A stretch of 64,000 nt of DNA from Andalucia godoyi And28 (lineage: Eukaryota > Protista > Jakobida). The position numbers and the translations under genes were made by a program. The first letter of the stretch is position 1, and every line of letters begins with the position of its first letter. Location of the stretch: positions 259,060 to 323,059 of the forward strand of contig VRVR01000027.1 in assembly GCA_009859145.1 (NCBI GenBank). The letters are read 5' to 3'. The notes beneath the pieces are model-generated. The model was not told the origin of the DNA and made no database searches. It saw nothing but the letters and a program-made list of their open reading frames with translations. This document shows, one piece after another, positions 3,140-28,286 of this stretch.

Positions 3140-3270
3140 ACACATGAGATGGCGCTTCGCACCTACACACACATCTTTCTCTATCGCTTCATTTTCCTGC
3201 ATTCTTTAGCGAGCGCTCTGACGGATTCTGGCGATATGGACACATGTGTTTCATCGATTTCCTTCAATTA

Positions 3271-7505: not shown

Positions 7506-10500
7506 ATGTTTCAGCGATTATTTTTAACGTACAATGCTTTCAATAGCATCGAGAGTTCGTTGAGCGGCATTGATGCGGACATTCGAATCACTCCTTTACG
7601 GCAACAGTTGTCGGCAGTTCGGCAGTCTCTTGAACAATCCGTCCACGGTCGCAAGGCTGCTGTGGCATTTTTTGGAGAAACTGGTGCAGGAAAGAGTTGT
7701 CTCATCAATGCGTTGCTTGGCACTCCGCTTTGCCTGCCACCTGGTGCAGGGGAGTCTGGAACGCATGTGCCCGTCATTATCCAAAAGGATGATATGGTTG
7801 ATAAATACTCTGTCCGTCGAATTTTTTGGGATCCCAAGGAACTATTGGCGAATCTGTGGGAAGCTGCACGGAGTGCAAAGCTGGTATCAACAAAAGGTTG
7901 CGACCAAAAACTTACCACAACCGGTTTGTCCGATTCTTCTGAGAATTCAACAGCCGGTAATGATTCTCAAAGTTCAGATGTGTATGAAGATTGTTTGCCT
8001 ATGGCTGTTCCTCCGCAACTTCCTGTCCATGATTCTGCTATTTTGGAGGTTGCGGAACAAATATTTGGGAAAGCGACTCGTTTTGAAGACGACAAAAAGA
8101 AGAGATACAGGGAGGTCTTGCATTCTGTGAAACTCAATAGAGATTATCTTCAGAATCCTGAATATTTTGGCGATCCTCAAAGTGTTTTTGAATATATCCG
8201 CGATCATGTTGAGCGGAAAGCCAACACTGTCCATTCTATCCAGACGGACAAAGAGATTGAGAATTTCTTTTTGCGAAATGTTGTCATCAGAGGGCCATTC
8301 CCAGACGCAATGGTCCCTGACGGCATGGTGCTGATGGATATGCCCGGTCTCATGGACGGAGAATGGATGTCTCAGTTTGCTGTTGTGTCCGAACTGCACA
8401 GGTCTTCCAGAGCTGTATTGGTGGTCAAAAATGATACTCCAGGCAATCATCAAATGATCCAAGATTTATTTGCCTTGATATTTTCTCTCTGCTCTTCTTC
8501 ACATAATCTGAACCTGGTGAATAATTTCATCATAGCTATATCCCACAAGGGATGTAAGCCTCCTCAAGTTTCGCAGAAGTATGTGAAGGGGTACCTTGAA
8601 AACTTTGAAACTCAACGAATGAAAGCAAGCCCTGATTCAAACAGCTCGAAACCGACATTCGTTGCTGTCAACTCTGTGATGTGCCTGATTCACAAGAAAG
8701 GTGTTTCTCTAAAGCAGCCTGCGCTTCTGGAAATGTGGAATCTGGAAGCCGATGAATTCGATGACATTTTGCATAATGGCAAAACAACAGCTGTTGCGTA
8801 CATGGCCGACTTATGCGACATGTGTCAAAATTTGTTTTCCACAAATGTAGCCTCTAATTTGAGAGATTTGAAGAAACTTGTGTCATACTTGCGTGCGCAA
8901 TCAAGAGGTGATATTTATTCATCCGAGTTGTTTCGGATTGATTATGAGAAGCTCCGACTGTCTCTTGCTCGTTGTTTACTAAAAGGCCAACGTAGACTCG
9001 AAGACTACTGCAAAGAAACCAAAGACAGGGGACTTTTGCGTTTGGTCGCTCATGTTTCCAGATTCATGGAGGACGCGGAAGACGTTGATGAGACCATCTT
9101 AGTTCTCGCACGGCGTATATTTGTTGGATCTGATGCTCGCCCCCAAATATGGTGGTTTAAGTTTGTTTCATTTGCTTCACAAATTGCAAGGGAAGCATAT
9201 GATGATTGTCTCATTGCTGTCGAGAAGTTTGCTTCACACGCCGATGGACTAAGTGGTGTGCGCCCCGATGACTTTTTGGGATGGCATTGGACTCTTCGTT
9301 TGGAACTAGATCTTCTCTTCAATGGCGTTGCGTCAAGGGCCTCCGCACAGTTAGAAAATTCTGTAGAGATTCTGATGGATTCTATCCGAACTAGAACAGG
9401 AGATATTATTTTGCGAACAAACTCCATTTCTGCACAAGAGTCTGATTCTACTGAAGAAGCTGCAGTAGAAGAACAACAGGTTGTTCAGTTTCAGAATTTT
9501 GTGAAATCTCTGTCAGAAAACTTTTTTTCCGTGCAGAAGTTGGTGAATCTCTTTGATGACCTTCCGAAAAATCCGACATTGTGGACGAAGCGACCTAAAT
9601 CAATTTCAAGCACTATCTTTGATGAAATCACGAATGTTCTGGAATGTTTGGACTCACAGAGCACTTTCAGCGGTCAAGGCTTGATTGGTGACCTGACAGC
9701 TGCACTTCAGCAGTATCGCGAAAGGCTCAAGCAGTTGATGTTTCCACAAAAATGGTCTGCTGGCTCTGAGCCTGGAATCTTCCTAGCAAAATTACTTTCT
9801 GACCCTGCCAAATGTTCTCTTGCGTTAATTTGCAAGAAGCTCGGGGTGTTTTTTGCGCCGTATATGTTTGGCCATTTTGTGGACGAACGATCGTGCCCGA
9901 AGAATGAGCGCCTTGAGAATGCAATGATTGATTATTTCAGGAAGTCGGGTTGGGACGCAACAACTGTACTAAGGGATTTGCACTCGACAGATGACAACGA
10001 TTGCAGGTACACCTGGACTTGGTTTGATTTCCTTATCTCAATTCGTGATCAACTCCATGTTTGCGGATTTTTATTGGATCATGTTGAAGCAACGACGGAA
10101 TTCAAATTTTACCTCAAGCTATCTAGCGACGATGTGTTGGTGGCAGTGCACGATCGACTCTTGTCGCTGTGGCGTCGAAGGATGAACGGATTCACGTGCT
10201 CTCCCCCACCGCTTTGTTTAGTGAAGGAATCTTCATCTTTTGCTTTTGAAAGTGTAGAAGCTTCTGGAATGTCCTTCTGCGCAAATGCGTGTGTTGGAAG
10301 CACATCGAACACTTTGGGTGGCTTCATTTCCGCCGGTGGTCGTGTTTTTGGCGTTCTTTGTGGTCATCTTTTTCTGGACATCAAGGATGTTGTGCGAGTA
10401 GAATGTTGTAAGGTTCCTCTTTTTCCTGATGATGTTGTAAGTCCTACTTCTCAAATCCTTCCCTTATCTGCTGTGGTTATTGACAAGTTTGAGCTCACGG

Positions 10501-11303
10501 ATAGATTTTCTGGAAAGAAAAAAACGTGGACCGGAAAGAGTGATTCTGAATATCTTGATTTTGGAAATCAGATACCGCCACCGACTTCTTCCAAGATGTG
10601 CGTTGTTGCTGGTTCACATTATTGCCTCACAATCCCATCTTTTGTATCATTTTGTCGACAAGGTCGCGCTTCTCTGACGAAGAAAAACAAAACTTTTCCT
10701 CCCCAGCTCATTTCTCGTCCCACTGGAAATGATTTGGCCATTTTTGAAATCTCGGATGTTGACAAAAGCTTGTTGTTCAACTCGGGCAAATTGACTCCTC
10801 TTCTGATGCCCATCGGGACAGAATTGGAAACTTCTACTATTCGGTGGCCTTTTTCTCAGTTTTTTATCCAAGATCCTCTTTTATCCATTTGTGATTTTCT
10901 CACTCAAGCCAGGCGACTTCAGTGTCGATTTGAGTGTTCAAAATTTGGGCTGTCGAGCGGATGGACTGTTGGTTTTCTGGATTCTGTTGCCCCCGTTGGA
11001 AGTTCTCCTCAAGGGTATAATTTTCCGTCGCTTTTGAAGATCAGAGCAGACGTTTCTGGTTCATGTTGCGGTCGGGTATTGTCAGGACCAGGAGATTGTG
11101 GTGCATTATGGATAGTTACAAGAGTGGTATGTCCAAGCATCGTTTCTCAACAAATATCTGATTATGCGCGGTCTTTAGTGAATGTGATAATTGGGGTTCA
11201 CATTTCTGGAGGAACTGAATTGGATTCTTCTGTATTTGCGCGGGCTCTTCCGTCTGAAATATTTATTTCCCAACTCTTTAACTCCGTTGGCAATCTGCAG
11301 TAA
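7506..11303 (+). CDS. Dynamin-like P-loop GTPase fused to a C-terminal trypsin-fold (NAL1/Ssy5-like) protease with Cys nucleophile
   Basis: G1 GETGAGKS (aa 57-64) with LINALLG, and G3 DMPG (aa 278-281). Protease motifs TLGGFI..VLCGHLF (H954), NDLAIFEI (D1076), CSKFGLSSGWTVG and SGPGDCGALW (C1198, TGT at 11097-11099). Confidence 0.8.
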   Translation: MFQRLFLTYNAFNSIESSLSGIDADIRITPLRQQLSAVRQSLEQSVHGRKAAVAFFGETGAGKSCLINALLGTPLCLPPGAGESGTHVPVIIQKDDMVDKYSVRRIFWDPKELLANLWEAARSAKLVSTKGCDQKLTTTGLSDSSENSTAGNDSQSSDVYEDCLPMAVPPQLPVHDSAILEVAEQIFGKATRFEDDKKKRYREVLHSVKLNRDYLQNPEYFGDPQSVFEYIRDHVERKANTVHSIQTDKEIENFFLRNVVIRGPFPDAMVPDGMVLMDMPGLMDGEWMSQFAVVSELHRSSRAVLVVKNDTPGNHQMIQDLFALIFSLCSSSHNLNLVNNFIIAISHKGCKPPQVSQKYVKGYLENFETQRMKASPDSNSSKPTFVAVNSVMCLIHKKGVSLKQPALLEMWNLEADEFDDILHNGKTTAVAYMADLCDMCQNLFSTNVASNLRDLKKLVSYLRAQSRGDIYSSELFRIDYEKLRLSLARCLLKGQRRLEDYCKETKDRGLLRLVAHVSRFMEDAEDVDETILVLARRIFVGSDARPQIWWFKFVSFASQIAREAYDDCLIAVEKFASHADGLSGVRPDDFLGWHWTLRLELDLLFNGVASRASAQLENSVEILMDSIRTRTGDIILRTNSISAQESDSTEEAAVEEQQVVQFQNFVKSLSENFFSVQKLVNLFDDLPKNPTLWTKRPKSISSTIFDEITNVLECLDSQSTFSGQGLIGDLTAALQQYRERLKQLMFPQKWSAGSEPGIFLAKLLSDPAKCSLALICKKLGVFFAPYMFGHFVDERSCPKNERLENAMIDYFRKSGWDATTVLRDLHSTDDNDCRYTWTWFDFLISIRDQLHVCGFLLDHVEATTEFKFYLKLSSDDVLVAVHDRLLSLWRRRMNGFTCSPPPLCLVKESSSFAFESVEASGMSFCANACVGSTSNTLGGFISAGGRVFGVLCGHLFLDIKDVVRVECCKVPLFPDDVVSPTSQILPLSAVVIDKFELTDRFSGKKKTWTGKSDSEYLDFGNQIPPPTSSKMCVVAGSHYCLTIPSFVSFCRQGRASLTKKNKTFPPQLISRPTGNDLAIFEISDVDKSLLFNSGKLTPLLMPIGTELETSTIRWPFSQFFIQDPLLSICDFLTQARRLQCRFECSKFGLSSGWTVGFLDSVAPVGSSPQGYNFPSLLKIRADVSGSCCGRVLSGPGDCGALWIVTRVVCPSIVSQQISDYARSLVNVIIGVHISGGTELDSSVFARALPSEIFISQLFNSVGNLQ

Positions 11304-11824
11304 TTCATAGGACATGTATTGGACAGCTTCTATTTTCAACAGTCGTGATTTCAGTGGTTCTGGTAATTACCTTCACTTTGCTGTTGCCGGTTTGAATGAA
11401 CCATTTCAGAGATAGAGTATTGTGTGTCTTGTCACTTTGAATTGATAAAATAACTTGTGGCTCACGTACATTGTTCTTGTGATATAATTAATTCAACCCG
11501 GAGACATCAGCTTTACTATTAACAGCATTCCCAAGTTTTCTGAGTCAGCAACTTCAAATCCGTTTATTTCACTGCTGAGGGGTTTCCAATTGCACGTATG
11601 TGGATCTGCGATTTGTGTCGAACCCTCTTGAATCGTTTTCATAGAAATTGCCCTTGATGGAGCCGAACTTTGTGGCACCCAGGCTTGCCACAGCATAACA
11701 GAATATTATGGATGTCTTTGAAACATCAGAAATTTGGCACGGGAAAGGATCATATCTCTCGTCGGGAGGACCGCAAAATTGGAGGGGTTGTTGAAAAATC
11801 ACTCATGCAGTCATGCGGCAGGTG

Positions 11825-13993
11825 CACCAAAACATCGCGGATTACAAGCGGTCCATTTTATGGTGTAAGAGATCCATTTTGAATTGTCAGCTTTACCCTA
11901 AAACAGCAACCGAATAAGCAGAGAAACATGGCCGACAAAGAATGCGATCCATTTAAAGTATGAAAAGCCGCGACCCAACAGACGCAAGAATCCCTGTCCA
12001 ACATTCCGATTCCGGAAGTTCCCCAGGAAGTGCTGCAGCGAGTCCGTCAAGGGACCTAACCCCAAGCACCAGCCAAGGTAACAACAACGCAAGTACCCCG
12101 GCAGTCAAGTCACCCGCGATACGGAGAACAAATGTGAATGCAGCCAGGCTCTTGCAGCAACCGAGTGAGGCTGTACAACTCGTTGTCTCCACCGATGTTG
12201 GAGAGCAGAACATGCCCCAGCTGCCCGAAGACCACTTTCCAGAGCTCAGCCATACCACCCTGACGGATTTCATGTCGAAATCGCAGAGGTTGCGTCTTCA
12301 GGAGCAAGAAAAAAGAGATAAGGAAGCGACTGCAAAAGCAGAGCTGGCAAACAAAGCCAGAGAGGCCACCATCCAAGCAGGGGTTCGTCAATTCTTAATG
12401 ACAGTGGCCGTTGACACCAGCGTGGAACAGAAAAAACAGGAAGACCAGGAGTCGCACGAAGGTGAAGAAGAGAAAGCGACACAGCATCGACAACCAAAGG
12501 ACACCATCTGCCGGAGAGACAAGGAGATTGTCTGGAACAGCATACGCAACGATACATCCACATTGCACGATCTGGCCGTCGTTTTGAATCACAAAGAAGA
12601 GACTCTGTACCAGACATTTCACCGGATGCAAAAGCGGGCGAGATGGGGAGAAGATCCGCTTCAGCCACTCGCGCACGGAGCGATGAATCCCCAAGTGCCG
12701 ACGACCTCGACTATTTTTTGATGACCAGCTTCTTTGGGCAGCGCGGCACTGGTCATCGACAACACTCTCCACTACAAAGACCTGGTGGGAATGATGCAGA
12801 AGCAGTTTCCAAAACTGGAACAGCACGATCGGGAAAACGGGGCTGCAGTGCTACAGCACTGGATGCATTTACATTTGGGATTCTGAGCAACTGATTTCTA
12901 TCCAGCCTCCCTAAGCAGAAATTTGCCGAGGATCATCGAAGCAAGGTACCAGTACGCAAAGATGATGTCGACTGTGAAACGTGCGGAGTACGACAATGCA
13001 ATCTTCATCGACGAGACACCGTTCAATGTTTGCGTGTTCCCAAGCGAAGGCCTGAGTGTGAAAGGATGCAGACCGCTGGTGCCGAATGGAAGCTCGACCT
13101 TCCGAACGTTTCTGCAATCGAGGCGTGAACAAAGAGAGGATCGCGTATTTTGGGTGCTACCTCGGCAGCGTCAAAGCGCAAACATACGCTGATTTTCTCA
13201 AACATCTCTTCGCCGAGTTGCAGAAGACTGGAGGAATTCCCAAGGAAGGGGATCCAAAACAGCTCATTGTCCAGGACAACTGTGCTATCCACAAAGCAAA
13301 AATCTGAAATCCCAGAAGGCATTGAAATGTGCTTTTTGCCCCCGTACTCGCCGTTTCTCGATCCGTGTGAGGAAGTCTTCAGCATGTGGAAATGGTATTT
13401 CACACAGATTGTGATGAACACTCTTCCGCATTCAAAGGAGAATCTTGTCGACTTGATATGCAAGGCCTACCGCCAAGTCACTTCTTCTGGAATCAAAGGT
13501 GCCTGGAATCATACTCTGTCGTCCTTCATAGATTCCTTGGACCGTCTGCCGGTATCAACGCAGCGGCTTCTTGACCACGTTCACACAGGAGACGAGAAGG
13601 AAGCTGCGGCGATTCGCAAATTCAAAGAATGGGGGTTGGAGTACACCCCGGCAAGAACGGACGCATCGATAGGACTCAGCGAAGAACACGAAGAGACTGT
13701 TGAAGAATCAGACACTGGAGAGCCACAGCCAGCAGGCGCCACCATCCATGCTGTTCAACAACATCTGGGAGAAGGACAAGATGATGATGATGACTAGGAA
13801 ATTCGAAGTGAGCGCTCCGTCTGACTTTCCTCGTAAAACATCAAAACAGCGGTGCACCGTGCAGCTGAGCGAAATAAAGAAGAACGCGGGAAAAAAAGAA
13901 GGAATTTTGGATCTTTGGCGTCAAGCCTTACAATTCAAAATGGATACCTGACTGTAAAAATGGATCGCTTACACAATCCGTGATGTTTAGGTG
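11825..13993 (+). mobile_element. Tc1/IS630-like transposon, copy 2 (inner end abuts TG, not TA)
   Basis: Mirror of 5069-7237. TA at 13994-13995, but 11823-11824 is TG. Confidence 0.88.
11960..13797 (+). pseudogene. DDE transposase pseudogene, copy 2
   Basis: Same lesions as copy 1: TGATGA at 12719-12724, a further in-frame TGA (LHLGF*ATDF), and frameshifts near RPLV, NVSAI and HKAK. Confidence 0.88.
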
Positions 13994-14231
13994 TAAGTGG
14001 TGGTTGCAGCAATTCACCGGGCTTGGGAGGTGCCATTGATCGGGAGACAGCTGCGTCATTTGATTCTAGATTCGAACGTCAAAGATCAGTCGGCAAACGG
14101 CGACGCCTGGAAACTCTTCATGCAACGTGCAAAAGAACTGTTGCGCTGTCGCATTTCGCACTTTTTTGACAAGGAAATTTATCGGTCTGGGTAATTAAGA
14201 TCTATCTATCTTTTCTTGTTTTTACAATCAA

Positions 14232-15791
14232 ATGCAAAACTCCATTCAATCTTTAGTTGACGGCAACAGTTATTTTGAGGCACTTGACAAAGCATTGCAA
14301 AGTTGTCGAAAATGCTTTATCATTATTGGCTTGTCTTTGGATCCGTTAACTCAATTGAAAGAAGGCAGAGCGCTTCATCAGGCGTTGAACGATGTTATGG
14401 AGCGAGACAAAGATTCATGTGGGTTTATCGTTTGTTGGAAAATCAAAGCAGATGCCGAGGAATGGAAGCTTCTATGTTCTACGCATAGATCACGGTTATT
14501 TGTGAAAGAAATGAGTAGATTGTTTAGTCTAAGTGAAAGTGTCATCTGGAGCCGGCATGAGAAAATTGTCGTCGTGGACAATCGAACTGTATTCTTTGGT
14601 GGTCTCGATATTTTACCAGATAGGTATGATACACAACTCCATGGAACGGTCCCATTTCCGCGCGGGGTATATAACAAGCTATTTCCACGATGGGCTCACG
14701 ACACCCGACTGCCTTGGCATGACTTGAATGTTTCATTTGAAGGAACAGGCTCTGAGATTTGTTCCCATGCCTACCATCGCCTTACACACGCATTCGGGAA
14801 GAACAAATATGCTGTACAGGTTCTGAGGAATATGAGAGAAAATCACTTTTCGAAATGCTCGCGGGATTCCAAGGTTCGGTTCTTCATGAATCCGTTCCGG
14901 AAGGATTTTGAAACTCCTCATCCAATTGCAGCGGAGTACATTCATCTCATTCATACAGCGAAAGAATTGATATATGTAGAAAATCAGTATTTTTCCAGTC
15001 TTCACATCCATGAGGAAGGAGAAGTAATTCGAGATACGCCAATGTCCGCGTTGGCGGATCGTCTAGTTCGAGCAGTAGAAAACAACGAATCATTTAGAGT
15101 TGTGATCCTTTTACCGGCCTTTCCCGATGCCGAAATCTGTCCTTTGTCGTTGGGTTCTCCGTTACATGCTGCTACTCGCACTTCTATTGATGCCTTCATT
15201 GAGCACGTGAGCTCGCGCGTGAATGAGGATAAGCGAGATGATGTGGTAGATTTCATCGCATTTTCGGCGTTAATGAATTACTCCTTGAAAAGCCAATCAA
15301 CTCAAGAGAGTGGATATCTTGTCGAATCGTGTAGCATGATTTATGTGCACTCGAAACTTATGATTGTTGACAAGCAAATTGCGGTCATTGGTTCAGCCAA
15401 TTTCAACGATCGAAGCTTTGAGCAAGATCAAGAATTGATTGCAACCATACATGACGAGAAATTTGCTACCGATCTTTTTCATGATTTGTGGACGGAGCAT
15501 CTCGGTCCAAACATCGATACAACAGTATCCTCCGTGGATCTTTTCACATTATGGCGAACGAAGGCCAACAACCTAGGTCGAATGATTCAGAAGTACATGC
15601 TGCCTGTCCCCAACAACAGCTTCAAGGAAAGGAAGGATTGGAAGTTTCATATGTATCAGATTCGTGAAAAACGGAGGTACATATGTGAATTACCTGATGA
15701 TATTCAGAATTGTCGAGTGTATGAGTACCCTCGATCCGCGCTCTCTGGTGATTTACTCGATTCAGACACGAAAAAGAAAGAATTATACTGA
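14232..15791 (+). CDS. Phospholipase D, copy 2
   Basis: Translation identical to 3271-4830. Confidence 0.92.
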   Translation: MQNSIQSLVDGNSYFEALDKALQSCRKCFIIIGLSLDPLTQLKEGRALHQALNDVMERDKDSCGFIVCWKIKADAEEWKLLCSTHRSRLFVKEMSRLFSLSESVIWSRHEKIVVVDNRTVFFGGLDILPDRYDTQLHGTVPFPRGVYNKLFPRWAHDTRLPWHDLNVSFEGTGSEICSHAYHRLTHAFGKNKYAVQVLRNMRENHFSKCSRDSKVRFFMNPFRKDFETPHPIAAEYIHLIHTAKELIYVENQYFSSLHIHEEGEVIRDTPMSALADRLVRAVENNESFRVVILLPAFPDAEICPLSLGSPLHAATRTSIDAFIEHVSSRVNEDKRDDVVDFIAFSALMNYSLKSQSTQESGYLVESCSMIYVHSKLMIVDKQIAVIGSANFNDRSFEQDQELIATIHDEKFATDLFHDLWTEHLGPNIDTTVSSVDLFTLWRTKANNLGRMIQKYMLPVPNNSFKERKDWKFHMYQIREKRRYICELPDDIQNCRVYEYPRSALSGDLLDSDTKKKELY

Positions 15792-15922
15792 TAATTGAAG
15801 GAAATCGATGAAACACATGTGTCCATATCGCCAGAATCCGTCAGAGCGCTCGCTAAAGAATGCAGGAAAATGAAGCGATAGAGAAAGATGTGTGTGTAGG
15901 TGCGAAGCGCCATCTCATGTGT

Positions 15923-18907
15923 CTACACAGACTCAGAAAAGGCTTTCCTGTATCGTTCAAAAAGCTTTGTTTGCTCGTTTGTAAAATAAAACCCAGCAGT
16001 TTTCAGAGTCCTCGTCGCAATAAACTTTTCGCGATCCGACCATTTAGCATGGTTGAAGACTTCAGACAGAACATTGCGTCCATTTTTCCTCATTTCCTTG
16101 ATACTGTCACGGAAACATTGCATGTCTGAAGCAAGCATTTCGAATCCTCTAGTGTCTACTCGAGAAAGCACCTGATCCACAGTGAGGTCCCACGGGATTT
16201 TCGGCTTTTTTTCATCGTCAAAGGTCAACCACAAAAGATCGTTGAGATCACTGTGTTTTTCAATCAATCTTGCGAACCCGAAATCTTGAATGGCAATATC
16301 GACCAATTCCAACTTATCCTTTCGCACCCACGAAGACCGCATAATGACCCATATAACGACATTCAAAATATCGAGATGACGATCCAAATTGCCTTTTCCA
16401 AACTGATACATGACGTCCCAAGCGTTTTTACAGTCCTCGAGAGACTGCAATGTCTGCATGTTGTTAGATAGCTGTTGAATTGTAGACTGCACAACGTTTT
16501 GGTATAACGTTTGACGAGGTGTGATTGTCAAATGAGGCACGTAATCAACTTGAAAACAACGTTTCCACAGGTCATGGAACATCGCACGCAAATCCTTGTC
16601 ATTATAGTCTTCAGCACAGTCAAACGTAATGCTGAGATGGTCTCCATTTTCTGACAGATCGAAAAGAAATCCAAAGAGAACATATCCATTGTCCGATACA
16701 CATCGCGACACCCATTTTCCATATTCTGTGATCGAATACGATGAAAGACCAATAACACAGCCAAGTTCACGGTTAGTCAGGTCGAGAAAACACTTTTTAG
16801 AAATCTCCGGGAAGTTGCTCCATGTTGACTGATATGACTTCTCGATATCTTCTTCATACAAACACTTCAGGCCTCGTCCTTTGAGCAATGATAATGTTCT
16901 TGATCGAAATACAGACAATACTGGAATAGACAGAGGAAATCCGGTCACCTTCTTCGACAAAAAATCAAACAAGAACTGGAGAATGATACTGCGATATTCC
17001 AGTAGTTGCACTTTTTCGATGAGTTGTGACAATGTCAAAGTGTCATCTTCATATATACTCTCAAACAAAGCGAAAAGGTTTTCGTCTTCTGAGAAAGTAC
17101 TTAAAACCATTCCGTTTTTCCGAATCTGCAGTTTGTATGAAGTACCGCCTACAAAAGCATGTGCAACAACCGACATAGAAGGCTGCAACAAGCCGTAAAG
17201 AACATCTTTGATGCTACTGAAGCTCGGAATGTGGTATTTCCAAAAGATGGAGAGATGTAAAATATCATTCCAGGCGTCCCAAATGACGATGCTGTCATCA
17301 AAAGTAATCTTCAGGGACTTTTGCTGCACATCAACATCTAATGATTTGATCGACGGGAAAAGTTGATGGGTCGCGTTGGCGTTATGAGGACTGTTTGGAT
17401 CACATAAATGATGAAGGAACATATCCTTTGAGTCAAAAATCAGATCTTGAACCGGTATTAACGCATGGTCGAAAAGCCACACACCCAAGCGCTTCCAGAT
17501 CAAAGAACTGGATATATCCACATGCTTTGAACGCAATTTGTAAGTCAAAGTAAGGCAATCTTGAACTTCTTGCCGCAAAGGATCCGTCGAAATAAGCCAT
17601 AGATGTTGAGCGGAAAACAGGAAGACACCTAGAAAAGGGCGAAAAGATTTCGATATCAAAAGAGTATCATGTTGATAAACCTGCTTGAAGCACTGAAAGC
17701 AACAAAACAAAGAAAACAGGAAATCTTCGTAATTTCCAGACGACAAGCCGCTTTCAAAGGATGCTCTGCAGAAATGAAAGCTAGCAGTCCAGAATTCCGA
17801 CATGGATGTTTGATTCAACCTCAGTGACTGCAGAGTGGAAGAAGAGTTCTCTCGCTCAATAAACCATGAAGGCGAAGGATTGAAGGGTGTGGGTTTCTCC
17901 ATGAGATCTTCATCATTTTGCTTTTGCTTTTTTGATGTTTTTCGAGGAGAAAGGGGACCTGAAGATGAATGAGAGAGAATGACGACTTCTTTGTCACTTG
18001 GTGTCCAGGAGAACCCCAGGTCATGTTGCACTTGAGCGTTAAACAAAAGTATCCGCATTTTCTCGCGCAATTCCGGTCTGCAATGACTCCAGGAACTTCG
18101 AAGATCCACGAGTTCCATACATCTTCTAAGATTGGATTCGAAATCTTTCTTCGAACGACGGATTAAAGCGCTGTAAAATAGCATTTTGGCAAGAACCCAT
18201 CTGCGAGCATATTCTGTGTCCCCGGATGATTCTACCTGGCAGAACTGAGAAGCCATCTTCAAAAGATTTTGACAATCTTGAAGAACAGGTGCATTCTTTG
18301 CCCGGGTGATAACATAGTTTGCAAAACACAGTGCGCATTGGATAATGTCGTTGGGCATATCATTAGCAAGTTGCTCGTCATTGATTATCACTTCAAAGAA
18401 AGGACGGTAACCCTGAAGGATGCTCATAGAACAATTATTCATCTCGATCACCCGAAACATACACTCGCAAGTAAGAACAATAAATGAACACATTTGCGTG
18501 CGAAGAAGTCCAAGGTCTTTCGACATCGACATACAAAATTGTGAGGTCGCTGTCTGATCTTGTGAAATCAATGCCAACCATACCGACCATAATTTGGAAG
18601 CGGATTTAAAGTTTCCCTGAGGCCTACGACCGCCAAGGCACTGATCACAAAATGTATCAAGTTTCAGGTAACGTTGGATTTTCCGAAAACCATCATCACC
18701 TTGAGTGACGAGCGCGGAAATACGGCTCTTCCAAAAAGCATCCACATAAATCCGAAATGAAAGGGGATCGTGTTTTCGATGACTGAATAAAATCCAGGAT
18801 ATGGTTTCTTCGAGAAGATCTAGAATTTTTGTCACATCAAAGTTCAACTTGTCAATTTTCGAATCTTCGAAGGAACAAATCCATGAGCTGATCAAGGAGA
18901 ATTTCAT
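15923..18907 (-). CDS. Orphan ~995-1008 aa protein, copy 2 (ORF open from 18949)
   Basis: Translation identical to copy 1. Confidence 0.8.
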   Translation of the reverse strand: MKFSLISSWICSFEDSKIDKLNFDVTKILDLLEETISWILFSHRKHDPLSFRIYVDAFWKSRISALVTQGDDGFRKIQRYLKLDTFCDQCLGGRRPQGNFKSASKLWSVWLALISQDQTATSQFCMSMSKDLGLLRTQMCSFIVLTCECMFRVIEMNNCSMSILQGYRPFFEVIINDEQLANDMPNDIIQCALCFANYVITRAKNAPVLQDCQNLLKMASQFCQVESSGDTEYARRWVLAKMLFYSALIRRSKKDFESNLRRCMELVDLRSSWSHCRPELREKMRILLFNAQVQHDLGFSWTPSDKEVVILSHSSSGPLSPRKTSKKQKQNDEDLMEKPTPFNPSPSWFIERENSSSTLQSLRLNQTSMSEFWTASFHFCRASFESGLSSGNYEDFLFSLFCCFQCFKQVYQHDTLLISKSFRPFLGVFLFSAQHLWLISTDPLRQEVQDCLTLTYKLRSKHVDISSSLIWKRLGVWLFDHALIPVQDLIFDSKDMFLHHLCDPNSPHNANATHQLFPSIKSLDVDVQQKSLKITFDDSIVIWDAWNDILHLSIFWKYHIPSFSSIKDVLYGLLQPSMSVVAHAFVGGTSYKLQIRKNGMVLSTFSEDENLFALFESIYEDDTLTLSQLIEKVQLLEYRSIILQFLFDFLSKKVTGFPLSIPVLSVFRSRTLSLLKGRGLKCLYEEDIEKSYQSTWSNFPEISKKCFLDLTNRELGCVIGLSSYSITEYGKWVSRCVSDNGYVLFGFLFDLSENGDHLSITFDCAEDYNDKDLRAMFHDLWKRCFQVDYVPHLTITPRQTLYQNVVQSTIQQLSNNMQTLQSLEDCKNAWDVMYQFGKGNLDRHLDILNVVIWVIMRSSWVRKDKLELVDIAIQDFGFARLIEKHSDLNDLLWLTFDDEKKPKIPWDLTVDQVLSRVDTRGFEMLASDMQCFRDSIKEMRKNGRNVLSEVFNHAKWSDREKFIATRTLKTAGFYFTNEQTKLFERYRKAFSESV

Positions 18908-19244
18908 GATAACAACGATAGGTCCGCAAACAAGAAAAAAGCGAAACAATGACCAAACTCAAAGAGGACAGTTACGTGATTTTCAAATTGTAGGTTTCGA
19001 GGTAGAGCGAAGAATTCTGGTGTTTTCATGCTCCCCACGGCCCAGCCACGTAGTCACGTGAGACTGTCGTTGCAAAAATCGGTTTTTCCCCGCCTTTTTT
19101 TTGAGGAGTGCACAGCATCCAGCATCAACTATTGATTTTATACAGTGCAGCGACCGAAATTCACCAAAACAACAATTTCCAGAAGTTGATTGCTGCCTCA
19201 GCTTTGTTTTTCTGTTCAACATCTTCTTCTTTTTCTCACGGCAA

Positions 19245-19979: not shown

Positions 19980-20248
19980 TATGCTCTGCGGTGGTTTGAT
20001 TGTTTTGATACTTCTTTTGCTGCCTCTCTATTAAAAATGCTCGATTGTCCGTTTGTTTCCAGAAACTTCTGTCTCGAATCATGGTCAACGACATGGGAAT
20101 CGAATAGCTGAATTTTGTGTAAAGAACTGTCATTGCTTCAGTGTGCAACATCTGATCAATAATAATGAGCGTGTTTCATACGGTTTTTCTTGTTCAGATC
20201 GTTCACTTCTGTAGGTACTGGCAATGACACTCACAGGTAATCAGGAAT

Positions 20249-23200
20249 CTACAGGACTTCTTGCGTTTCGCTGCATAACACGCAAACTCCAGCTTGCTCA
20301 AGGCAGCGATTGAGATCGCGAGACGTTGCATGGGTATCTGGATGATCTGGTCCAAGAACTTGTTCTCGATTGCGTAGAACGTCTCGATATCCTAATAATG
20401 CGGCATCGTAATCCTCTTTGAGCATGCGACACCGGGCAATGCTGTGTCGCGTAGTCAACGTCATCGGATGCAAATCACCCAAAAGTCGCTGCTGTGAATC
20501 CACAACAGACGAAAACTCCTCTAGGGCGTCCTCATACTTGCCTTGATCCATTAGGCAATACGCAATTCCATGACACATCTCATACGTATCAGGATGATCT
20601 GTTCCCAGCAGCCGCTGTCGATCATGTAAAACCGCTTTGTATTCCGATATCGCTGTATCCTTATGTAGTAACATAAGGCATTTTCCATAGTTGTAACGAA
20701 TATCGAGGGTAATTGCATCTTCAGGATCAAGGACTTGCTCCTGATCTTTGAGTAGGCATTCCAACAGCTTCAGTGGAACATCTAAGTCACTTTGAAGCAT
20801 GCGACACGAAGCAGTACTGTTCCGAATACGCAAAACTTCGGGATGCTGGACTCCGAGACGTTTCTCTTGAATATCCAACAAGGTTTCAAACTCCTGAAGT
20901 GCTATGTCGTATTCTCTGCTGAGTTTCAAACAATGGGCAACATCATACAGACAGGTGCACGTAAAAGGATGACTACTGCCGAAAGACTGTTCTGCAGCGA
21001 TGTGAACATCCTGAAATCGTGAGAGGGTCATCTTGTAGTTCCCTTGATCGCATACGGATGAAGCAACGTCCTTTCTTGACTCTAAAGTGTCGACATGTCC
21101 AGCGCCAAAAAGTTGGGTCTTGATAGCTGTCAATTCTTCAAGTGCTCAATCGCACTACCATATTTCCTTTGTGCTCGTAAACATGAAGCAATGTCATGCC
21201 GACGTGAAAGCGTCGCCGGATGCTCGGCACCCAGGACCTCCAATTCAGTTTCAAGAAGAGATTCCAACATCTCCAGCGTCGCATCATACTTGCTTTCGGA
21301 CTGCAATGTCAGAGCTAAGCTGTTCCGCGATCGCAGTGTGTCCAGGTGTCTCGAACCGAAAACCCCCTCTTGAACAGCAATCAACGATTCAAGCTGTTCT
21401 CGTGCAACATCGTAGTGTCCGAGGTCGCGATGACACAGAGCAATGTCATGCCGACGTGAAAGCGTCGCCGGATGCTCGGCACCCAGGACCTCCAATTCAG
21501 TTTCAAGAAGAGATTCCAACATCTCCAGCGCCGCATCATTCTTTCCGTCAAATTGCAATGTGTAGGCCAAATCTTCTCGCGAAAGTAGCGTGTCAGAATG
21601 AGTCACACCGAAAACCAGCTCCTGAACAACAATCAACGATTCAAGCTGTTCTCGTGCAACATCATACTCTTCGAGGTCGCGATGACACAGAGCAATGTCA
21701 TGCCGACGTGAAAGCGTCGCTGGATGCTCGGCACCCAGGACCTCCAATTCAGCCTCAAGAAGAGATTCCAACATCTCCAGCGCCGCATCATACTTGCTTT
21801 CGGACTGCAATGTCAGAGCTAAGCTGTTCCGCGATCGCAGTGTGTCCAGGTGTCTCGAACCGAAAACCCCCTCTTGAACAGCAATCAACGATTCAAGCTG
21901 TTCTCGTGCAACACCGTAGTGTCCGAGGCTGCGATGACAAGCAGCAATGTTGCTTCGACATGTGAGAGTAATTGGGTGCTCAGCACCCAGAACCTCGATT
22001 ACAATCTCAAGAAGAGATTCCAACATCTTCAGCGCTGCATCATACTTGCCTTCAGACTGCAATATCAGAGCCAAGTCGATGCGCGATCGCAGTGTGTCCA
22101 GGTGTCTCGAACCGAAAACCCCCTCTTGAACAGCAATCAACGATTCAAGCTGTTCTCGTGCAACATCGTAGTGTCCGAGGCTGCGATGACAAACAGCAAT
22201 GTTGCTTCGACATGCGAGTGTCACTGCACGATCAGCACCCAGAACCTCGATTACAATCTCAAGAAGAGATTCCAACATCTCCAGCGCCGCATCATACTTG
22301 CCTTCGGACTGCAATATCAGAGCCAACTCGATCCGCGATCGCAGGGTTCTAGGGTGTTTAATGCCAAGCATCTTCTCTTGCATCGAAACAACATATTTGA
22401 ATTGTTCAATAGCTTCCGAATGCTTTCCAATAAAATGAAAACATTGTGCAATGTTAGCCCGCACTTCCAGCGTCTTCAAGTCTTCCTCGCCGAAACTCTC
22501 GATGTTCATTTTCAAAACGGATTGAAACATTGAAAGTGCGTCTTCGCACTTTCCTTGATGAAGAAGACATAAACCCAGATTGTTCCTTATAGAATCAACT
22601 GTGACATTCTGGTTTGTTCCTGTCAATGACCGCTCCAACACACCACTCAGGAGCGGAACGACAGGTTTCAGCTGACCAAGATCAGACAAACAGCTTGCGA
22701 CTTTGCATACAAGATTTGTGCCCAGACCTTCCTTCAAAAGCGACGACACGCATTCCAAAGGGAATAATCTGACAACACACGCACTGTGATTTCCACGACG
22801 AAGGCCAGATACTAAGTGACAACAATGTTCAAAATAGTCGGGCGTATTATTTCCAAACATTTCTTCAAAAATAAGCAGAGTATGTTCCCGGGACGAAGCT
22901 AGCCGTCTCGCATCACTCGGAGACGTGTATATGGCAAGATGTGGACGGCAACTAGTTCGAATGGCATTGGCCACGTGAAACGCGGTCGGCCTACGCGGGA
23001 AATCGCGAGACAGAATTCGCTCCATTACTCGTAACCACACACAATCAACGAATTCTAAAAGGTTCTCAGAAATCCCTGAACATCGAAATGAATCTTGCCA
23101 TTTCTCAAAAGAACTCGAAGAGTCGTCATCCAAACGAGCATTCTGAGGATGAAGCAACCACGACAAAACCAATCCTAGAGAAAAAACATCGGATGCGGTA

Positions 23201-24723
23201 GTGGATTTTTCATATCGTTGTTGTTCCGGACTGTTCCATCCTGGCGTTCCCAACACAGGCTTCGCAGTCTTCTCAACTTGAGCAAGGCCAAAATCACACA
23301 GGCACACATGCATCGAACGGATGGCATCGACACACTTGGAATCGCAAATTTCAACGATACCCTTCTCGATGTTTTCATGAATCCATAATTCATGAGACAC
23401 AAGCACGTTTTCTGGTTTCAAGTCAAGATGCATGTACTCCAGAGAGTGCATGTATCCAACAGCAGAAGCAATCTGAGAAGCCACATGACGACAAACAAGT
23501 AACATCTCGCGCGGTGATGACATCCATCGCGTCGACCAGTCTGTGGATGAAATGTAGTCCTTCAATGAACCATGATCAAAGTACTCTGTAAACACTGCTC
23601 CGTCGTGAGCAAAAACAATTGGTGCAATATGCGAATGACCATCTAAAGCACTCCATGTAGTTTCTTCCACGTGCTGAACATCAGGATGGCATGACACCTT
23701 ACAGGCAAACATTTTTTTCTGTGATCCGAGAAGCACGCGATACACCGCCCCGCATCCACCTACCCCGATGCAGTCCAAGACTTCCATGAGCGACTGCCCG
23801 TCAGAATGACGACAGAGCGTTTGCATCAGATTCTCCATCTTCTCGTGTGCATACATCAACGGCAAACGAGTGCGGATGGAGAGCTCCAAGAAAGAAACTC
23901 GGCCCTTCGCACACGAATTCCAGGTCCAACTTAGCAACACCACACAGCAACAAGCACTGACATCTGTGCAATAGGCGTATACAGGTGGTACGCTTTTCTG
24001 CTTGGAAATCTGCAACTCCAAACAGTAAAGCTGTGGCGTATTGGTAGTAGTACAAGATGCACAATCCGAAATTACTGTTCGGAAATCGTCATGAGATCCA
24101 ACACCGTGAAGAGAAAACTTTCCAAAACATGCAGAAGCTTCCATAGAGCGATCCACTGATTTGCGATTAAATCCGTTGACCGATAACGCATTGGACAATT
24201 GTAAGATTGTGGACTTTCCCATGCCGCCACGGCTCAGCAAGCCTTCCTCATCTGATTTACGGACACAATAGCACATCAAAGGTTTGTGCAGTCGTATTTC
24301 ATGATTCGCATCATATTTCCAATGACGCAGAGCAGTGCAAGAACTGAACGCAGACAAAGAAAGGTCTTTAAATTCTGAGTCCAAAACACACCATGGCTCT
24401 TCAATTCCGACAACCCCCCAAAATAATTTAGACGACCATTTCAGAATACTGTCCTTGATCTGAGAAACATCATCTGCGGATATTGCCTCTTGTCCTGAAA
24501 CCGAAATGCAAAACAGTCTCACCACAGGAGTCGTTTCATTTCCTGTCTCGTTCCGTGGCCAAAGCTTTGCCAGTCGTCGATCATCAGGTGTCAATTGCGT
24601 ATACAGTGTACATAAAATCGGATACACTCTTATAACTGCCGACGACCATGAACTCGGGATACCAAACGACAATTCCTTGAGTCGAAGTTGCGAAAGTGGA
24701 ATTTCCAGTGAATGGTCAAGCAT
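20249..24723 (-). CDS. Ser/Thr kinase with a large N-terminal extension and C-terminal 42-aa (kinesin-light-chain-type) TPR array; one gene split by a 1-nt frameshift at ~21131
   Basis: Kinase motifs GVGGCGAVY, FACK, HLDLKPENVL, DFGLA, NSPEQ and SDVFSLG. Repeats of LG..H..TL.SR..+A continue seamlessly into ORF 20249-21133 if one T is restored (HLKN-LTAIKTQLFG). Confidence 0.88.
21180..22350 (-). repeat. Near-identical 252-bp coding tandem repeats (pairs of 42-aa TPRs), about 4.5 units
   Basis: GCAATGTCATGCCGACGTGAAAGCGTCGC recurs at 252-bp spacing (about 21187, 21439, 21691), with diverged units further on. Confidence 0.9.
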
Positions 24724-24833
24724 TGCAGGGTCGTTGAACAGGATTAACAGGAAAACTCATCGCGGAAAAGAATTCCGCACCTCAGAAGCCGAGATCACCG
24801 GAAATTCAGAAAAGCGGTTTCGGATGACATGAC

Positions 24834-27800
24834 ATGTCAGCTCAAAAAGCAATGCCAGCCCGGGTCCCAAATTTCAAGTCTGCACCAGAAGTTCGCTTTT
24901 GCGTTTCTTTTCACCGTTTCTACGAATTCAAACGTTCCAATATGCTTCCAGTTCTGTTTGATCTTGAGAACACTCTTATTGTTCCTACCAAAAATGAACG
25001 ATGGCTATCACTTTCTTCGTGTTGGATGACAAGTCCTGTTCTTGACGCCAAACAATTGCTAAATCTGATTCACAAACATCTGGACAGTGATGAGTCGGTT
25101 GTCTTTTTAGGATTATGGAGTACTGCTCGCCAGGAGTCTTTGTTCACAGCTGATGATTTCGAGCGTAGAAAATGCCCAGAGATTCAGGAGCATCTTTCTC
25201 AATTCGACGAACTTCTTGTTCTCATTGTTCCTGACTATGTCCGTCCATTTGTGGATAATGTCATTCTTCATCGCAACATTGTGGAATTAGGTTTGCGCGG
25301 AGTTAATCCAGTGAATCCAGATTCACGGACGAGGTATCACGACAAGTACTCAATGTTATCCAAGGAAAACACTCAATCCTTGGGGTGGGCATCAAAGTCG
25401 TTGCTGCATGAATGTCAAGCGAGCGTTTCTGAAATCGCTTGTGATTGGATGTTCCAGTTTGAACAAATCAATTTGTGGAGGTTTGATCGCTGTCTCTCTT
25501 TACTGGGAGACGATGATTCTAGTAATGCAATCTCAAAGGTGTTAAAAGAGGATTTGAACGTCCACATTCAAATTTCCCCTTCGTATACGACTTTGAACAG
25601 GCCATCACTTTTTGGATTTCTTTTTTCGCCGCTAAGCGCGTTTGGACCAGATTCTGCCCAGGAGCCAGTATTCGGCGCAACTTTCGATAATGAAGGCAAG
25701 AAATTTGTTGTTGGATGTTTTTTACATCACGAGGGTTGCGAAGACTCTGAAATTGGCACGTTCGGCAATTTACACCCTTTTGAGAACTCTTCGCTTGAAT
25801 TTCATTTTACAAATGGTGCATTGCGGGTGCGTGGGTTGACAATTGCAGAGATTATTGTTGATGAAAATACCAACCATGTGGCACCAACCAACCAGCGTAC
25901 GTTCTGTCTGCACCATGTACAAATTGAAGTCGACGGAACCATGGTTCTCTGGTTTCGCTGGGGCTCACGGATTCTTCTGTGTCTATCTTTGAGACACATA
26001 GAGGGCGAATTGAAGGAAGTGAGATACAGTCTGTGGACTCTTGATAGTGATACAGGTCAGCGCAACGTCTCACTTGGTTGTGCATCTGTTACATGGTCGT
26101 CGCAGAAAGGTTTTGCGATACTTCCTTCCGACTATTTTAGTCTCCGAAACGGAGTTTCTGTCAGCCTTACGGATGTTCGTCGTTTCCCCGACTTCCAGGT
26201 TGTGTCTGCTGGAATCCGAATGTGTCTCGGGAGCCATTCATCATATGAATGTATGCATGGTTCACAGTCTTTTACGTCTTTGGCCAACTGCGACTGCGGT
26301 GAGATATTATTGTTTGAGCGATCTTCTCATGCGTGCATTGCGAACTTTATCGGACGCATTCGATCTGGTCGCTTGGTGTCCGACGAAGACTGTCGTGAAT
26401 TATGGATGGAACACAACGCTACAATGGAGGGTCGTTTTGTGGACGAGCTTCCGTCAGGAATCATGAAATTGACAATCTGCGGAAATGTGGAATACGCTAC
26501 CTATCGCAACGGCCGCATCGTGGAAGAAATCATATCATTGAGCGAGCGATATGCTGCCTTTATCCAGCAGTTGCGGGATCTGTTCTCGACCGATGAGATC
26601 TTTCTAGATGAGAATGAGAGCTCTCTTTTGATGGTTCTTCATGGTGGCCTGCCAGTGTGCTTGTTTTGTGTTCGGTGTGTGATAGGGAGCGGTGCTGAAG
26701 CAGTTGTGTATCGAGGTCTCACCCTGCACCACGGTCCCGTTGCTGTGAAGATCTTCCGTCGGTCCATCGGCGATGGAACCGAAGAGGCAAAAACTCAACA
26801 ATTCTTTTCTGACCAAATGGACCATTTGGGAGAGGAAGAGTTATTTGGCCGTATTCCTCGGCAGTCGACTGGCCAGTTTCCTAGTTTGGTTCGAGTCTTG
26901 TACATTGGAGCTGTAGATTCCGGAAGGAGTGTCGGAAGTGTTTTGCAGCAAGAGAGCGCTCTTGTTATGTCTTATTATCCTGAAGGAGATGTATTCGGAA
27001 AGAATCGACGGATTCAGGAGAATCTGTCGCCCAGATTATTGTTTCACCAGCTGAATCTCCTTGCCAGCACTGTCGCTGCACTTCATGAGGCACAGTTAAT
27101 TCATCGCGATATCAAGCCGAGCAACATCTTGTTGAATAACAATGGATCGAGCGGTTCTTACTCCTTTTGTCTCACAGATTTTGGAATTTCTTCCGTTCGT
27201 TTGGAGGCGCAAACGTACGTCGATTCCAGTGCAAATCCGAACTATCCACTTGGATCTCCTTGGTGGCGACCTCCCGAATTCGTGCACCAACCAGCGTTGC
27301 GGACGCCCCGTTCGGATGTCTTCAGTCTCGGATGGACTATGTTGTACCTCGCGCAAGTACAACGAATGGGTATGACCAGCGAGTATTTGCAGCATGCCTG
27401 TCAAGTTTCTTCAGCCTTGAATTCTGATCTATTCTCTTCTGGGGACGAGAATGAGTACTTTACTTATTCGGAAATGGTAAATAGAGACTTGCAGTCGTTG
27501 CGGGATGGTCATATTCAGACTCACTTGCGAACAGATGTTCATTCGACGACGACGTCCCGCATCTTGTTTTCCCATCTTCTGAGTCGAATGGTAGCATATG
27601 ATTACACTGACCGTTTGAAAATGAAAGGTGTTGTGATGCATCCTTTCTTTTGGAGCGCAAGCCAGTGTGTACAATTTGTTGTTGACGTTGCTCAGCCGTT
27701 AGCAGATTTGTTTCGAGAAGTTCAAGGCATTGAAGGCTTACATTACCAGAATTTCGAACATGCGCACAGTTCCTTTGCGTTGAATCACTTTTTGAGGCAC

Positions 27801-28286
27801 ACCGTGTCACCGTCTTCCATGCTTCCTTTTTCGTCGCCAGGTCAGCGATCATCACCAGATTCTATGATGTTAGAATCAATGTTGGATGTCATTTCGTTTG
27901 AACAGGCGTTAATGGAATACTGTGTCCATCCCAAGAACAATTATTCCGTGTACAAGCGCCTGTGCCAGCATGGACGGATGTGTGTCTTTTTCGTTTTACG
28001 TTTCATCCGTAACTTAGCATGCCATACCCCGCTGCTATCACGAGTTTTCCGTCAAGATGCGTGTCATCGATATGAGAGTCACACTCTTGTGTATCTTTTA
28101 CTTAGCCAGAGTGGAAAGAATGGAGACCTATTCGGTCGTATTGTTGAAATTGTCAGTGAACTGTCGATGATCTTGTTGGAAAACGAGAGTCAGTTGACAT
28201 TGACAGATCGTCAGATCTTTAAATCTCTTCAAGCTTGCGGATTTCTTCCAAAATCTGATCCCGACGAATTTCTCGAGCATCGTTGA
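24834..28286 (+). CDS. Protein kinase with C-terminal KEN endoribonuclease domain (RNase L/IRE1-like) and ~600-aa unknown N-terminus
   Basis: Kinase motifs GSGAEAVVY, VAVK, HRDIKPSNIL, TDFGIS, RPPE and SDVFSLG, then HPFFWS (kinase-KEN junction) and LRFIRNLACH, which matches the KEN catalytic R-x2-R-N-x3-H. Confidence 0.82.
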   Translation: MSAQKAMPARVPNFKSAPEVRFCVSFHRFYEFKRSNMLPVLFDLENTLIVPTKNERWLSLSSCWMTSPVLDAKQLLNLIHKHLDSDESVVFLGLWSTARQESLFTADDFERRKCPEIQEHLSQFDELLVLIVPDYVRPFVDNVILHRNIVELGLRGVNPVNPDSRTRYHDKYSMLSKENTQSLGWASKSLLHECQASVSEIACDWMFQFEQINLWRFDRCLSLLGDDDSSNAISKVLKEDLNVHIQISPSYTTLNRPSLFGFLFSPLSAFGPDSAQEPVFGATFDNEGKKFVVGCFLHHEGCEDSEIGTFGNLHPFENSSLEFHFTNGALRVRGLTIAEIIVDENTNHVAPTNQRTFCLHHVQIEVDGTMVLWFRWGSRILLCLSLRHIEGELKEVRYSLWTLDSDTGQRNVSLGCASVTWSSQKGFAILPSDYFSLRNGVSVSLTDVRRFPDFQVVSAGIRMCLGSHSSYECMHGSQSFTSLANCDCGEILLFERSSHACIANFIGRIRSGRLVSDEDCRELWMEHNATMEGRFVDELPSGIMKLTICGNVEYATYRNGRIVEEIISLSERYAAFIQQLRDLFSTDEIFLDENESSLLMVLHGGLPVCLFCVRCVIGSGAEAVVYRGLTLHHGPVAVKIFRRSIGDGTEEAKTQQFFSDQMDHLGEEELFGRIPRQSTGQFPSLVRVLYIGAVDSGRSVGSVLQQESALVMSYYPEGDVFGKNRRIQENLSPRLLFHQLNLLASTVAALHEAQLIHRDIKPSNILLNNNGSSGSYSFCLTDFGISSVRLEAQTYVDSSANPNYPLGSPWWRPPEFVHQPALRTPRSDVFSLGWTMLYLAQVQRMGMTSEYLQHACQVSSALNSDLFSSGDENEYFTYSEMVNRDLQSLRDGHIQTHLRTDVHSTTTSRILFSHLLSRMVAYDYTDRLKMKGVVMHPFFWSASQCVQFVVDVAQPLADLFREVQGIEGLHYQNFEHAHSSFALNHFLRHTVSPSSMLPFSSPGQRSSPDSMMLESMLDVISFEQALMEYCVHPKNNYSVYKRLCQHGRMCVFFVLRFIRNLACHTPLLSRVFRQDACHRYESHTLVYLLLSQSGKNGDLFGRIVEIVSELSMILLENESQLTLTDRQIFKSLQACGFLPKSDPDEFLEHR

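Follow-up and report, generated by a model that had tools for sequence, protein, structure and literature searches.

RNase L is considered an antiviral enzyme of vertebrates, and IRE1 the universal kinase-RNase of endoplasmic reticulum (ER) stress. Here, we analyzed a stretch of 64,000 nucleotides from the nuclear genome of the jakobid protist Andalucia godoyi And28 (contig VRVR01000027.1, positions 259,060 to 323,059; hereafter the window), in which two divergent protein kinase genes lie close to a GTPase-protease gene, a phospholipase D (PLD) gene and a large open reading frame (ORF) of 1008 residues. The original prediction took the whole interval from 7506 to 28286 for one clustered cell-death, antiviral or effector system. 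We favor a different reading, to which we give a probability of roughly 55%: the interval is not one system but a transposon-disrupted and possibly subtelomeric region that holds small lineage-restricted multi-domain families and one linked kinase pair. One kinase of this pair carries a KEN-like C-terminal end, and its protein has the same order of parts as RNase L and IRE1, namely an N-terminal non-catalytic region, a kinase and a C-terminal helical extension (PMC4061530). The other kinase is followed by an array of tetratricopeptide repeats (TPR). The features of the pair, and a relic nearby, are given below in window coordinates.

20249-21133, minus strand: frameshifted continuation of the TPR array (294-aa ORF; TPR_12 2.2e-30)
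21130-24723, minus strand: kinase-TPR ORF, 1197 aa
21133-22656, minus strand: TPR_12/TPR_10 array (Pfam), which includes recently amplified 252-nt units
22909-23793, minus strand: protein kinase of the kinase-TPR gene (Pfam Pkinase), with HLD in place of HRD
23794-24723, minus strand: N-terminal region of the kinase-TPR protein, 310 aa, with no known domain
24724-24833: spacer between the divergent kinase ORFs, 110 bp by the longest ORFs
24834-28286, plus strand: kinase-KEN-like ORF, 1150 aa (ANDGO_07190)
24834-26633, plus strand: N-terminal region of about 600 aa with no known domain and no transmembrane segment
26634-27638, plus strand: IRE1-like kinase with Lys, HRD and DFG intact (Pfam Pkinase 1.5e-23)
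27639-28283, plus strand: KEN-like C-terminal region, with RFIRNLACH at 27999-28025
30556-30714, plus strand: pseudogene relic of a KEN-like C-terminus (tblastn, 48-52% identity over about 48 aa), with a degraded catalytic motif

The kinase-KEN-like gene compared with RNase L and IRE1

Among all solved structures, IRE1 is the nearest to the kinase of the kinase-KEN-like gene. Whether the single sequence or a profile of three paralogues was used, the 16 best distinct PDB sequences were all IRE1, with E-values of 9e-17 to 1.6e-13, and the next kinase followed at 1.9e-11. The best IRE1 match is separated from the other kinases by about five orders of magnitude in E-value. In addition, the IRE1 alignment does not stop at the end of the kinase but crosses it into the first KEN helix (i-Evalue 2.4e-5). 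By these matches, the kinase domain is specifically IRE1-like.

The region that follows the kinase contains the segment RFIRNLACH (R-x-x-R-N-x-x-x-H), which aligns with the R-x-x-R-N-x-x-H-H/E-H motif of IRE1 and of fish multi-KEN proteins. This segment and the motif at the kinase-KEN junction are invariant in the three paralogues, in a region that is 48% identical, and the window protein has both the junction motif and the Arg-Asn...His motif with a spacing equal to that in RNase L and IRE1. The last His of the segment corresponds to the residue of phosphodiester hydrolysis in yeast Ire1 (H1061) and in RNase L (H672) (PMC8104961). Alignment of the active-site segment to KEN gives an hhalign probability of 65% and an E-value of 5.9e-5, with the Tyr placeable only by means of an insertion. 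On these grounds, we regard it as reasonably probable that the C-terminal region is a KEN domain.

The layout of the protein resembles that of RNase L more than that of IRE1, with a novel N-terminal region of about 600 aa. Like RNase L, the protein is predicted to be soluble, and no transmembrane-like segments were found in it outside the kinase N-lobe. It differs from IRE1 by having neither a luminal domain nor a transmembrane segment, and orthology of the gene with IRE1 was rejected for their absence. It differs from RNase L in that no ankyrin repeats were found in it with Pfam, and in that its kinase keeps the catalytic residues, whereas RNase L is a pseudokinase. The N-terminal region matches nothing; residues 1-599 gave no significant Pfam domain, with DUF2145 as the only hit, far below the cutoff at an E-value of 0.088. 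Two further differences set the window gene apart from RNase L and IRE1 alike: its KEN region is too divergent for the Pfam family PF06479, and its partner is a TPR kinase.

Over 883 residues, the EukProt protein ANDGO_07190 and the kinase-KEN-like ORF are 100% identical. The 909-aa model of this protein covers ORF residues 37-919 and then diverges, so that the KEN-like end is missing. The genomic ORF runs uninterrupted past the point of divergence, and the paralogue models contain the KEN-like end; the annotation of ANDGO_07190 is probably wrong at its C-terminus. Two paralogues are present in A. godoyi. ANDGO_07774 is 51-53% identical to the window protein, and the third gene of the family, ANDGO_06880, is 74% identical, with a model that is short at the N-terminus. 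A metagenome scan with the KEN-like alignment returned 458 pattern matches, of which 0 were confirmed.

The TPR kinase and the linkage of the pair

The kinase-TPR and kinase-KEN-like genes are arranged divergently, head to head, and the 110-bp spacer between them is likely a shared promoter region. Their closest paralogues have consecutive locus tags, ANDGO_07775 for the kinase-TPR gene and ANDGO_07774 for the kinase-KEN-like gene. The identity of the kinase domain to that of the paralogue is nearly the same for the two genes, at 58.6% for kinase-TPR and 58.4% for kinase-KEN-like. The paralogue tags are adjacent and the kinase identities are near equal; therefore, the two kinase genes appear to have been duplicated, and to have persisted, as a pair. 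As judged from these comparisons, the pair (20249-28286) is the only part of the interval with evidence of functional linkage. The link that the original prediction drew between the TPR kinase and the kinase-KEN gene thus stands, as the two recur together as ANDGO_07775/07774, and its extension to the other genes is not supported. An arrangement in which a sensor is coupled to a kinase-KEN protein, resembling RNase L, is plausible by analogy.

The kinase-TPR protein is closest to ANDGO_07775, with 54% identity and full coverage of residues 1-680. Its N-terminal residues 1-310 are 53.5% identical to this paralogue. A third kinase-TPR gene, ANDGO_07406, is distant. Between the kinase-TPR paralogues, the TPR arrays are only 28% identical, compared with 42-59% for the remaining domains. 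In the window, the array contains a tandem repeat with a period of 252, 4.6 copies and 86% matches, and the 252-nt units are 83-92% identical to one another at the DNA level. The internal repeats of fungal NLR repeat domains are highly alike in the same way. Pairwise ratios of nonsynonymous to synonymous substitution rates (dN/dS) among the units are 0.42-0.68, which rules out positive selection on them and suggests that they are under relaxed constraint. The TPR array appears to turn over fast.

With respect to known proteins, the best NCBIfam match of the kinase-TPR protein is FxSxx_TPR (6e-83). Bacterial Ser/Thr kinase-TPR proteins, which are among the matches, likewise join a kinase to a TPR_10/TPR_12 array. 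The TPR-type STAND/NLR sensors of fungi and bacteria differ from the window protein, which has no NACHT or NB-ARC NTPase. Neither NTPase was found by Pfam in the proteins of any of the five large ORFs in the interval, and membership of the island proteins in the NLR group was rejected for its absence. The 310-aa N-terminal region distinguishes the protein from the bacterial kinase-TPR proteins and from the STAND/NLR sensors, being confined to the A. godoyi paralogues.

The sequence at the 3' end of the kinase-TPR ORF shows that the TPR array resumes in the +1 frame past the stop codon. The reference gene models stop at the very codon that ends the 1197-aa ORF. The gene is either truncated or hit by a sequence error.

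Neighboring genes, repeats and the region to the right

The nuclear genome of A. godoyi is compact, with a size of about 20 Mb, and introns are absent from the vast majority of its genes (PMC7050145). Its assembly was built from 454 reads with Newbler, followed by manual joins and Illumina correction, and its subtelomeric scaffolds consist mainly of transposon- and viral-like sequence (PMC7050145). In the ORF listing, the five large ORFs of the interval lie at precisely the limits given in the original prediction. Their intact, intronless structure had been read as a special feature; it carries no signal here, because intron-poor genes are the default throughout the genome (PMC7050145). An exact-sequence look-up of the five ORFs found no identical entry in the protein collection, and Rfam and tRNA scans of the window were empty. 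The remainder of the interval and the flank to its left contain the following features.

1-7237: left arm of an inverted repeat, with mirror copies of the 1008-aa ORF, the PLD gene and a transposon relic
113-3139, plus strand: mirror copy of the 1008-aa ORF, in the left arm
3271-4830, minus strand: mirror copy of the PLD gene, in the left arm
5069-7237: mirror copy of the transposon relic, in the left arm
7506-11303, plus strand: GTPase-protease ORF, 1265 aa
about 7584-8690, plus strand: dynamin-like G domain, with P-loop GETGAGKS at 7674-7697 and DxxG (DMPG) at 8337-8348
about 10266-11300, plus strand: candidate C-terminal chymotrypsin-like triad domain, by conserved motif columns
11825-19061: right arm of the inverted repeat, with the transposon relic, the PLD gene and the 1008-aa ORF; its outer end pairs with window position 1
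11825-13993, plus strand: degraded Tc1/mariner-like DDE transposon, 2169 bp, with terminal inverted repeats and DDE_3 pieces
14232-15791, plus strand: PLD ORF, 519 aa
15923-18949, minus strand: ORF of 1008 aa without a recognized domain

The GTPase-protease protein appears to represent a separate, very rare family that combines a dynamin-like G domain with a C-terminal triad. Like members of the dynamin superfamily, it has an N-terminal Dynamin_N G domain (33.7 bits against a Pfam cutoff of 27) with a P-loop and DxxG; mitofusin and LeoA/LeoBC of the Eleos/LeoABC system are weak matches. It differs from the superfamily in that a stalk or GED region is not recognizable and in its fusion to a chymotrypsin-like triad domain. 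The middle part between the G domain and the triad domain is a region of unknown kind. The five family members compared (the window protein, P0179, P0180, P0181 and P0183) share invariant motif columns within their last 340 residues, namely G-H, D-x-A, GD[S/C]GA-W and G-x-H. A chymotrypsin-fold (PA-clan) His/Asp/Ser triad is proposed because the order and the context of these motifs match, with His954, Asp1076 and Cys1198 as the candidate triad of the window copy. The assignment of this end as a protease, made from motif conservation alone, is probable. The nucleophile column is Ser in all relatives and Cys1198 in the window copy. A Cys nucleophile serves the chymotrypsin fold in the viral 3C-type proteases, and by analogy the Cys1198 copy may be an active or a weakened protease. 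The C-terminal region had no Pfam or PDB profile match. AlphaFold2, run on this region with the five-sequence alignment, gave an unusable model with a predicted local distance difference test score (pLDDT) of 34.6. A Foldseek search with this model found nothing significant, and DegS, HtrA, SGPB or trypsin-type proteins make up 18 of the 50 best weak matches.

A word-index homologue search with the GTPase-protease protein gave no matches, and only four relatives emerged when 1.84 billion representative proteins were searched exhaustively; in these, both ends of the protein are kept. P0179 and P0180 are full-length relatives from one Joint Genome Institute (JGI) metagenome, and P0182 is a fragment from the same sample. 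The fourth is ANDGO_08437 of A. godoyi itself, of which ANDGO_00703 is a near-identical second copy. All three metagenomic relatives occur in JGI sample 3300042934, and one is also present in SRR35185192; they point to one unsampled organism with three members of the family. In one metagenomic relative (L003 922-4448, L004 743-4269), the gene is called as consecutive ORFs of 511 aa and 652 aa, which suggests an intron or a frameshift. The fusion is a very rare architecture for which no function has been described.

The PLD ORF matches PLDc_2 (2.6e-16) and PLDc (3.4e-14) in Pfam and has two intact HKD motifs, HEKIVVVD at residues 109-116 (14556-14579) and HSKLMIVD at residues 373-380 (15348-15371). 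Among PDB entries, it is closest to human PLD1/PLD2 and plant PLD alpha in their catalytic cores, and it shares the two HKD motifs with them. It differs from classical eukaryotic PLD in being compact, at 519 aa, without the PX, PH and C2 targeting domains. The 1008-aa ORF had no domain match in Pfam, PADLOC, NCBIfam or PDB. The most reasonable view is that the GTPase-protease gene, the 1008-aa ORF and the PLD gene are unrelated neighbors in a repeat-rich, possibly subtelomeric region.

Several statements of the original prediction can be judged at this point. As to enzyme classes, the dynamin-like GTPase, the two-HKD PLD and both kinases were recovered by Pfam, and the protease and the KEN RNase are weakly supported. 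The statement that nearly every large gene carries a potentially toxic enzyme fails at the 1008-aa ORF. Large fusion genes interspersed with transposons are found insofar as the five ORFs and a Tc1/mariner-like relic are there; the kinase-TPR gene is frameshifted and the 1008-aa ORF is domainless.

A repeat search showed that positions 1-7237 and 11825-19061 form an inverted repeat of 7237 nt that is 100% complementary. This length is a lower bound (at least 7237 nt), as the left arm is cut by the start of the window. The arms duplicate the PLD gene, the 1008-aa ORF and the transposon relic, and both copies are 100% identical by tblastn. The original prediction had overlooked this perfect repeat of at least 7.2 kb. 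The unique center between the arms measures 4587 bp and holds the GTPase-protease gene. The transposon relics noted in the original prediction are borne out by the 2169-bp element, whose two ends form terminal inverted repeats that can be aligned over about 85 bp; shorter inverted-repeat pairs were also detected. The inner boundary of the large repeat is precisely where these terminal inverted repeats begin. DDE_3 model positions 44-94 and 104-130 are matched by collinear pieces in two frames, both below threshold, and the transposase is broken across at least two reading frames. TA is read on both flanks in the left copy only. By these features, the relic is probably a degraded element like those of the Tc1/mariner (IS630-type) group.

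The perfect repeat may have arisen by a very recent inverted duplication associated with the transposon. Alternatively, it may be a misassembly in which a collapsed transposon copy leads into the wrong flank. With identical arms and a boundary that falls on the transposon end, both readings stand. Either way, the GTPase gene adjoins the PLD gene solely via a transposon.

The original prediction placed the interval next to a virus-like region. To the right of the kinase pair, no viral hallmark families were found among ten ORFs scanned, and a recombinase and a helicase are present. In a eukaryotic nuclear genome, these two genes may derive from a mobile element or from horizontal transfer, and mobile-element-like is a fairer label than virus-like. 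The features of this region are as follows.

35762-37513, minus strand: SF2/ResIII helicase
38265-38760, 45136-46295 and 56910-57557: tandem arrays of one 91-102-nt unit, 81-92% matches
42647-44026, minus strand: serine recombinase of prokaryote type (Resolvase 1.2e-35), similar to XisF and CcrB
51950-53731 and 59478-60866, both minus strand: local paralogous ORF pair with no database annotation (226 aa shared, 33% identity, E 5e-28)

Another tandem array, at 41472-41897, is made of 93-111-nt units rich in GGGGATATGGG with 96-98% matches. On both strands, and in several frames, this array gives rise to long ORFs that are spurious.

Explanations of the interval and their meaning

Several results weigh against the kinase pair as a functional RNase L-like module in a subtelomeric region. 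The adjacency of the paralogous pair was read from consecutive locus tags and not from DNA, and no partner of ANDGO_06880 or ANDGO_07406 turned up in the homologue searches. A shared segmental duplication without functional coupling would also explain the equal divergence of the two kinases. As to the KEN-like end, Pfam PF06479 had no match in the whole protein or in residues 921-1150, even at E<=10, and a profile restricted to KEN retrieved no KEN domain from PDB. A hidden Markov model built from known KEN domains gave 13.2 bits, compared with 9.0 for the best of 3000 shuffles. AlphaFold2, run on the kinase-KEN region with a three-sequence alignment, returned an unusable model (pLDDT 30.6). 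Finally, the subtelomeric location is a guess.

In a less probable explanation, ordinary lineage-specific signaling and membrane-traffic genes have come together by chance in a repeat-rich region. The kinase pair would then be a segmental duplication, and the KEN-like tail a divergent helical extension without nuclease activity. The failure of the Pfam and PDB profiles to find a KEN domain fits such a tail, as the dN/dS among the TPR units, which is below 1, fits ordinary genes. Close head-to-head packing, which is frequent in the A. godoyi genome (PMC7050145), also speaks for this explanation. In addition, the frameshift in the kinase-TPR gene and the KEN-like relic nearby suggest decay. A tail without activity is harder to reconcile with the R-x-x-R-N-x-x-x-H motif and the junction motif, which are invariant despite a regional identity of 48%, and with a kinase that is specifically IRE1-like. 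Moreover, both genes of the duplicated pair are intact enough to retain all their domains.

A single antiviral or cell-death system made up of all five clustered genes, in which the TPR kinase would sense, the kinase-KEN protein would cut RNA, and the GTPase-protease and the PLD would act at membranes, is improbable. Three small families are indeed represented within 21 kb, and the interval is rich in transposons. Transposon-rich settings in other organisms hold fast-evolving gene families. At the level of domains, PADLOC also found relatives from defense systems (LeoA/LeoBC, DrmC and the kinases mad6 and PD-T4-6); these matches are limited to generic catalytic cores. The cluster is, however, not conserved in relatives. 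The four contigs that bear the three metagenomic GTPase-protease relatives have housekeeping neighbors only: Vta1, TMEM234, a WD40 protein, an M16 peptidase, PAP2, a radical SAM enzyme, a DAG kinase accessory domain, dUTPase and CIAPIN1. No homologue of the PLD, the kinases or the 1008-aa ORF was found on these contigs. Within A. godoyi, the paralogues of the island families have dispersed locus tags (00703, 06880, 07406, 0777x and 08437), scattered among the families. The 1008-aa ORF is without an enzyme domain, and the PLD and GTPase genes meet at a transposon end that lies within a repeat which may be artefactual. The proposal of a 21-kb island acting as one circuit is not upheld by these data.

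A further explanation, that a large mobile or virus-derived element which includes the serine recombinase, the SF2 helicase and the 91-nt tandem arrays carries the genes as cargo, is very improbable: the prokaryote-type recombinase, the ResIII helicase, the repeat arrays at three sites and the transposon- and viral-like subtelomeric sequence described for the genome (PMC7050145) speak for it, but none of the ten scanned ORFs matches a capsid, polymerase or packaging family, three scans of viral contigs, in which the helicase, the recombinase and the 91-nt repeat served as queries, found nothing, boundaries of such an element were not identified, and island-gene paralogues lie elsewhere in the genome.

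If, as we favor, the interval holds small families and one linked kinase pair, the kinase-KEN-like protein would act like RNase L or IRE1, as a soluble, regulated endoribonuclease. Either the novel N-terminal domain would sense the signal or the partner TPR kinase would pass it on, and back-to-back dimerization of the kinase domains would follow. The kinase dimer might then form a composite KEN RNase site with the Arg-Asn...His motif and cleave RNA. Infection or stress may be the trigger, and defense or stress signaling the output. A fuller proposal joins these parts: a jakobid soluble RNase L-related family, whose proteins unite a novel sensor domain with an active IRE1-like kinase and a KEN RNase, would make up a conflict or stress module together with the non-RD TPR kinase, beside an undescribed family of dynamin-like GTPase and chymotrypsin-like protease fusions. 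Taken as a whole, this proposal is doubtful.

Our analysis also counsels caution when a locus is read from sequence by itself. In this genome, intronless genes are ordinary, the cluster of seemingly toxic enzymes is not conserved in relatives, and the large repeat is possibly an artefact of assembly. As judged from sequence comparison, the two-gene RNase L-like module and the rare fusion family are candidates worth modest follow-up. If the module is real, a deep-branching protist has a soluble kinase-KEN family whose N-terminal domain is new and whose dedicated partner is a TPR kinase. Regulated kinase-KEN nucleases would then have served more than ER stress early in the history of eukaryotes.

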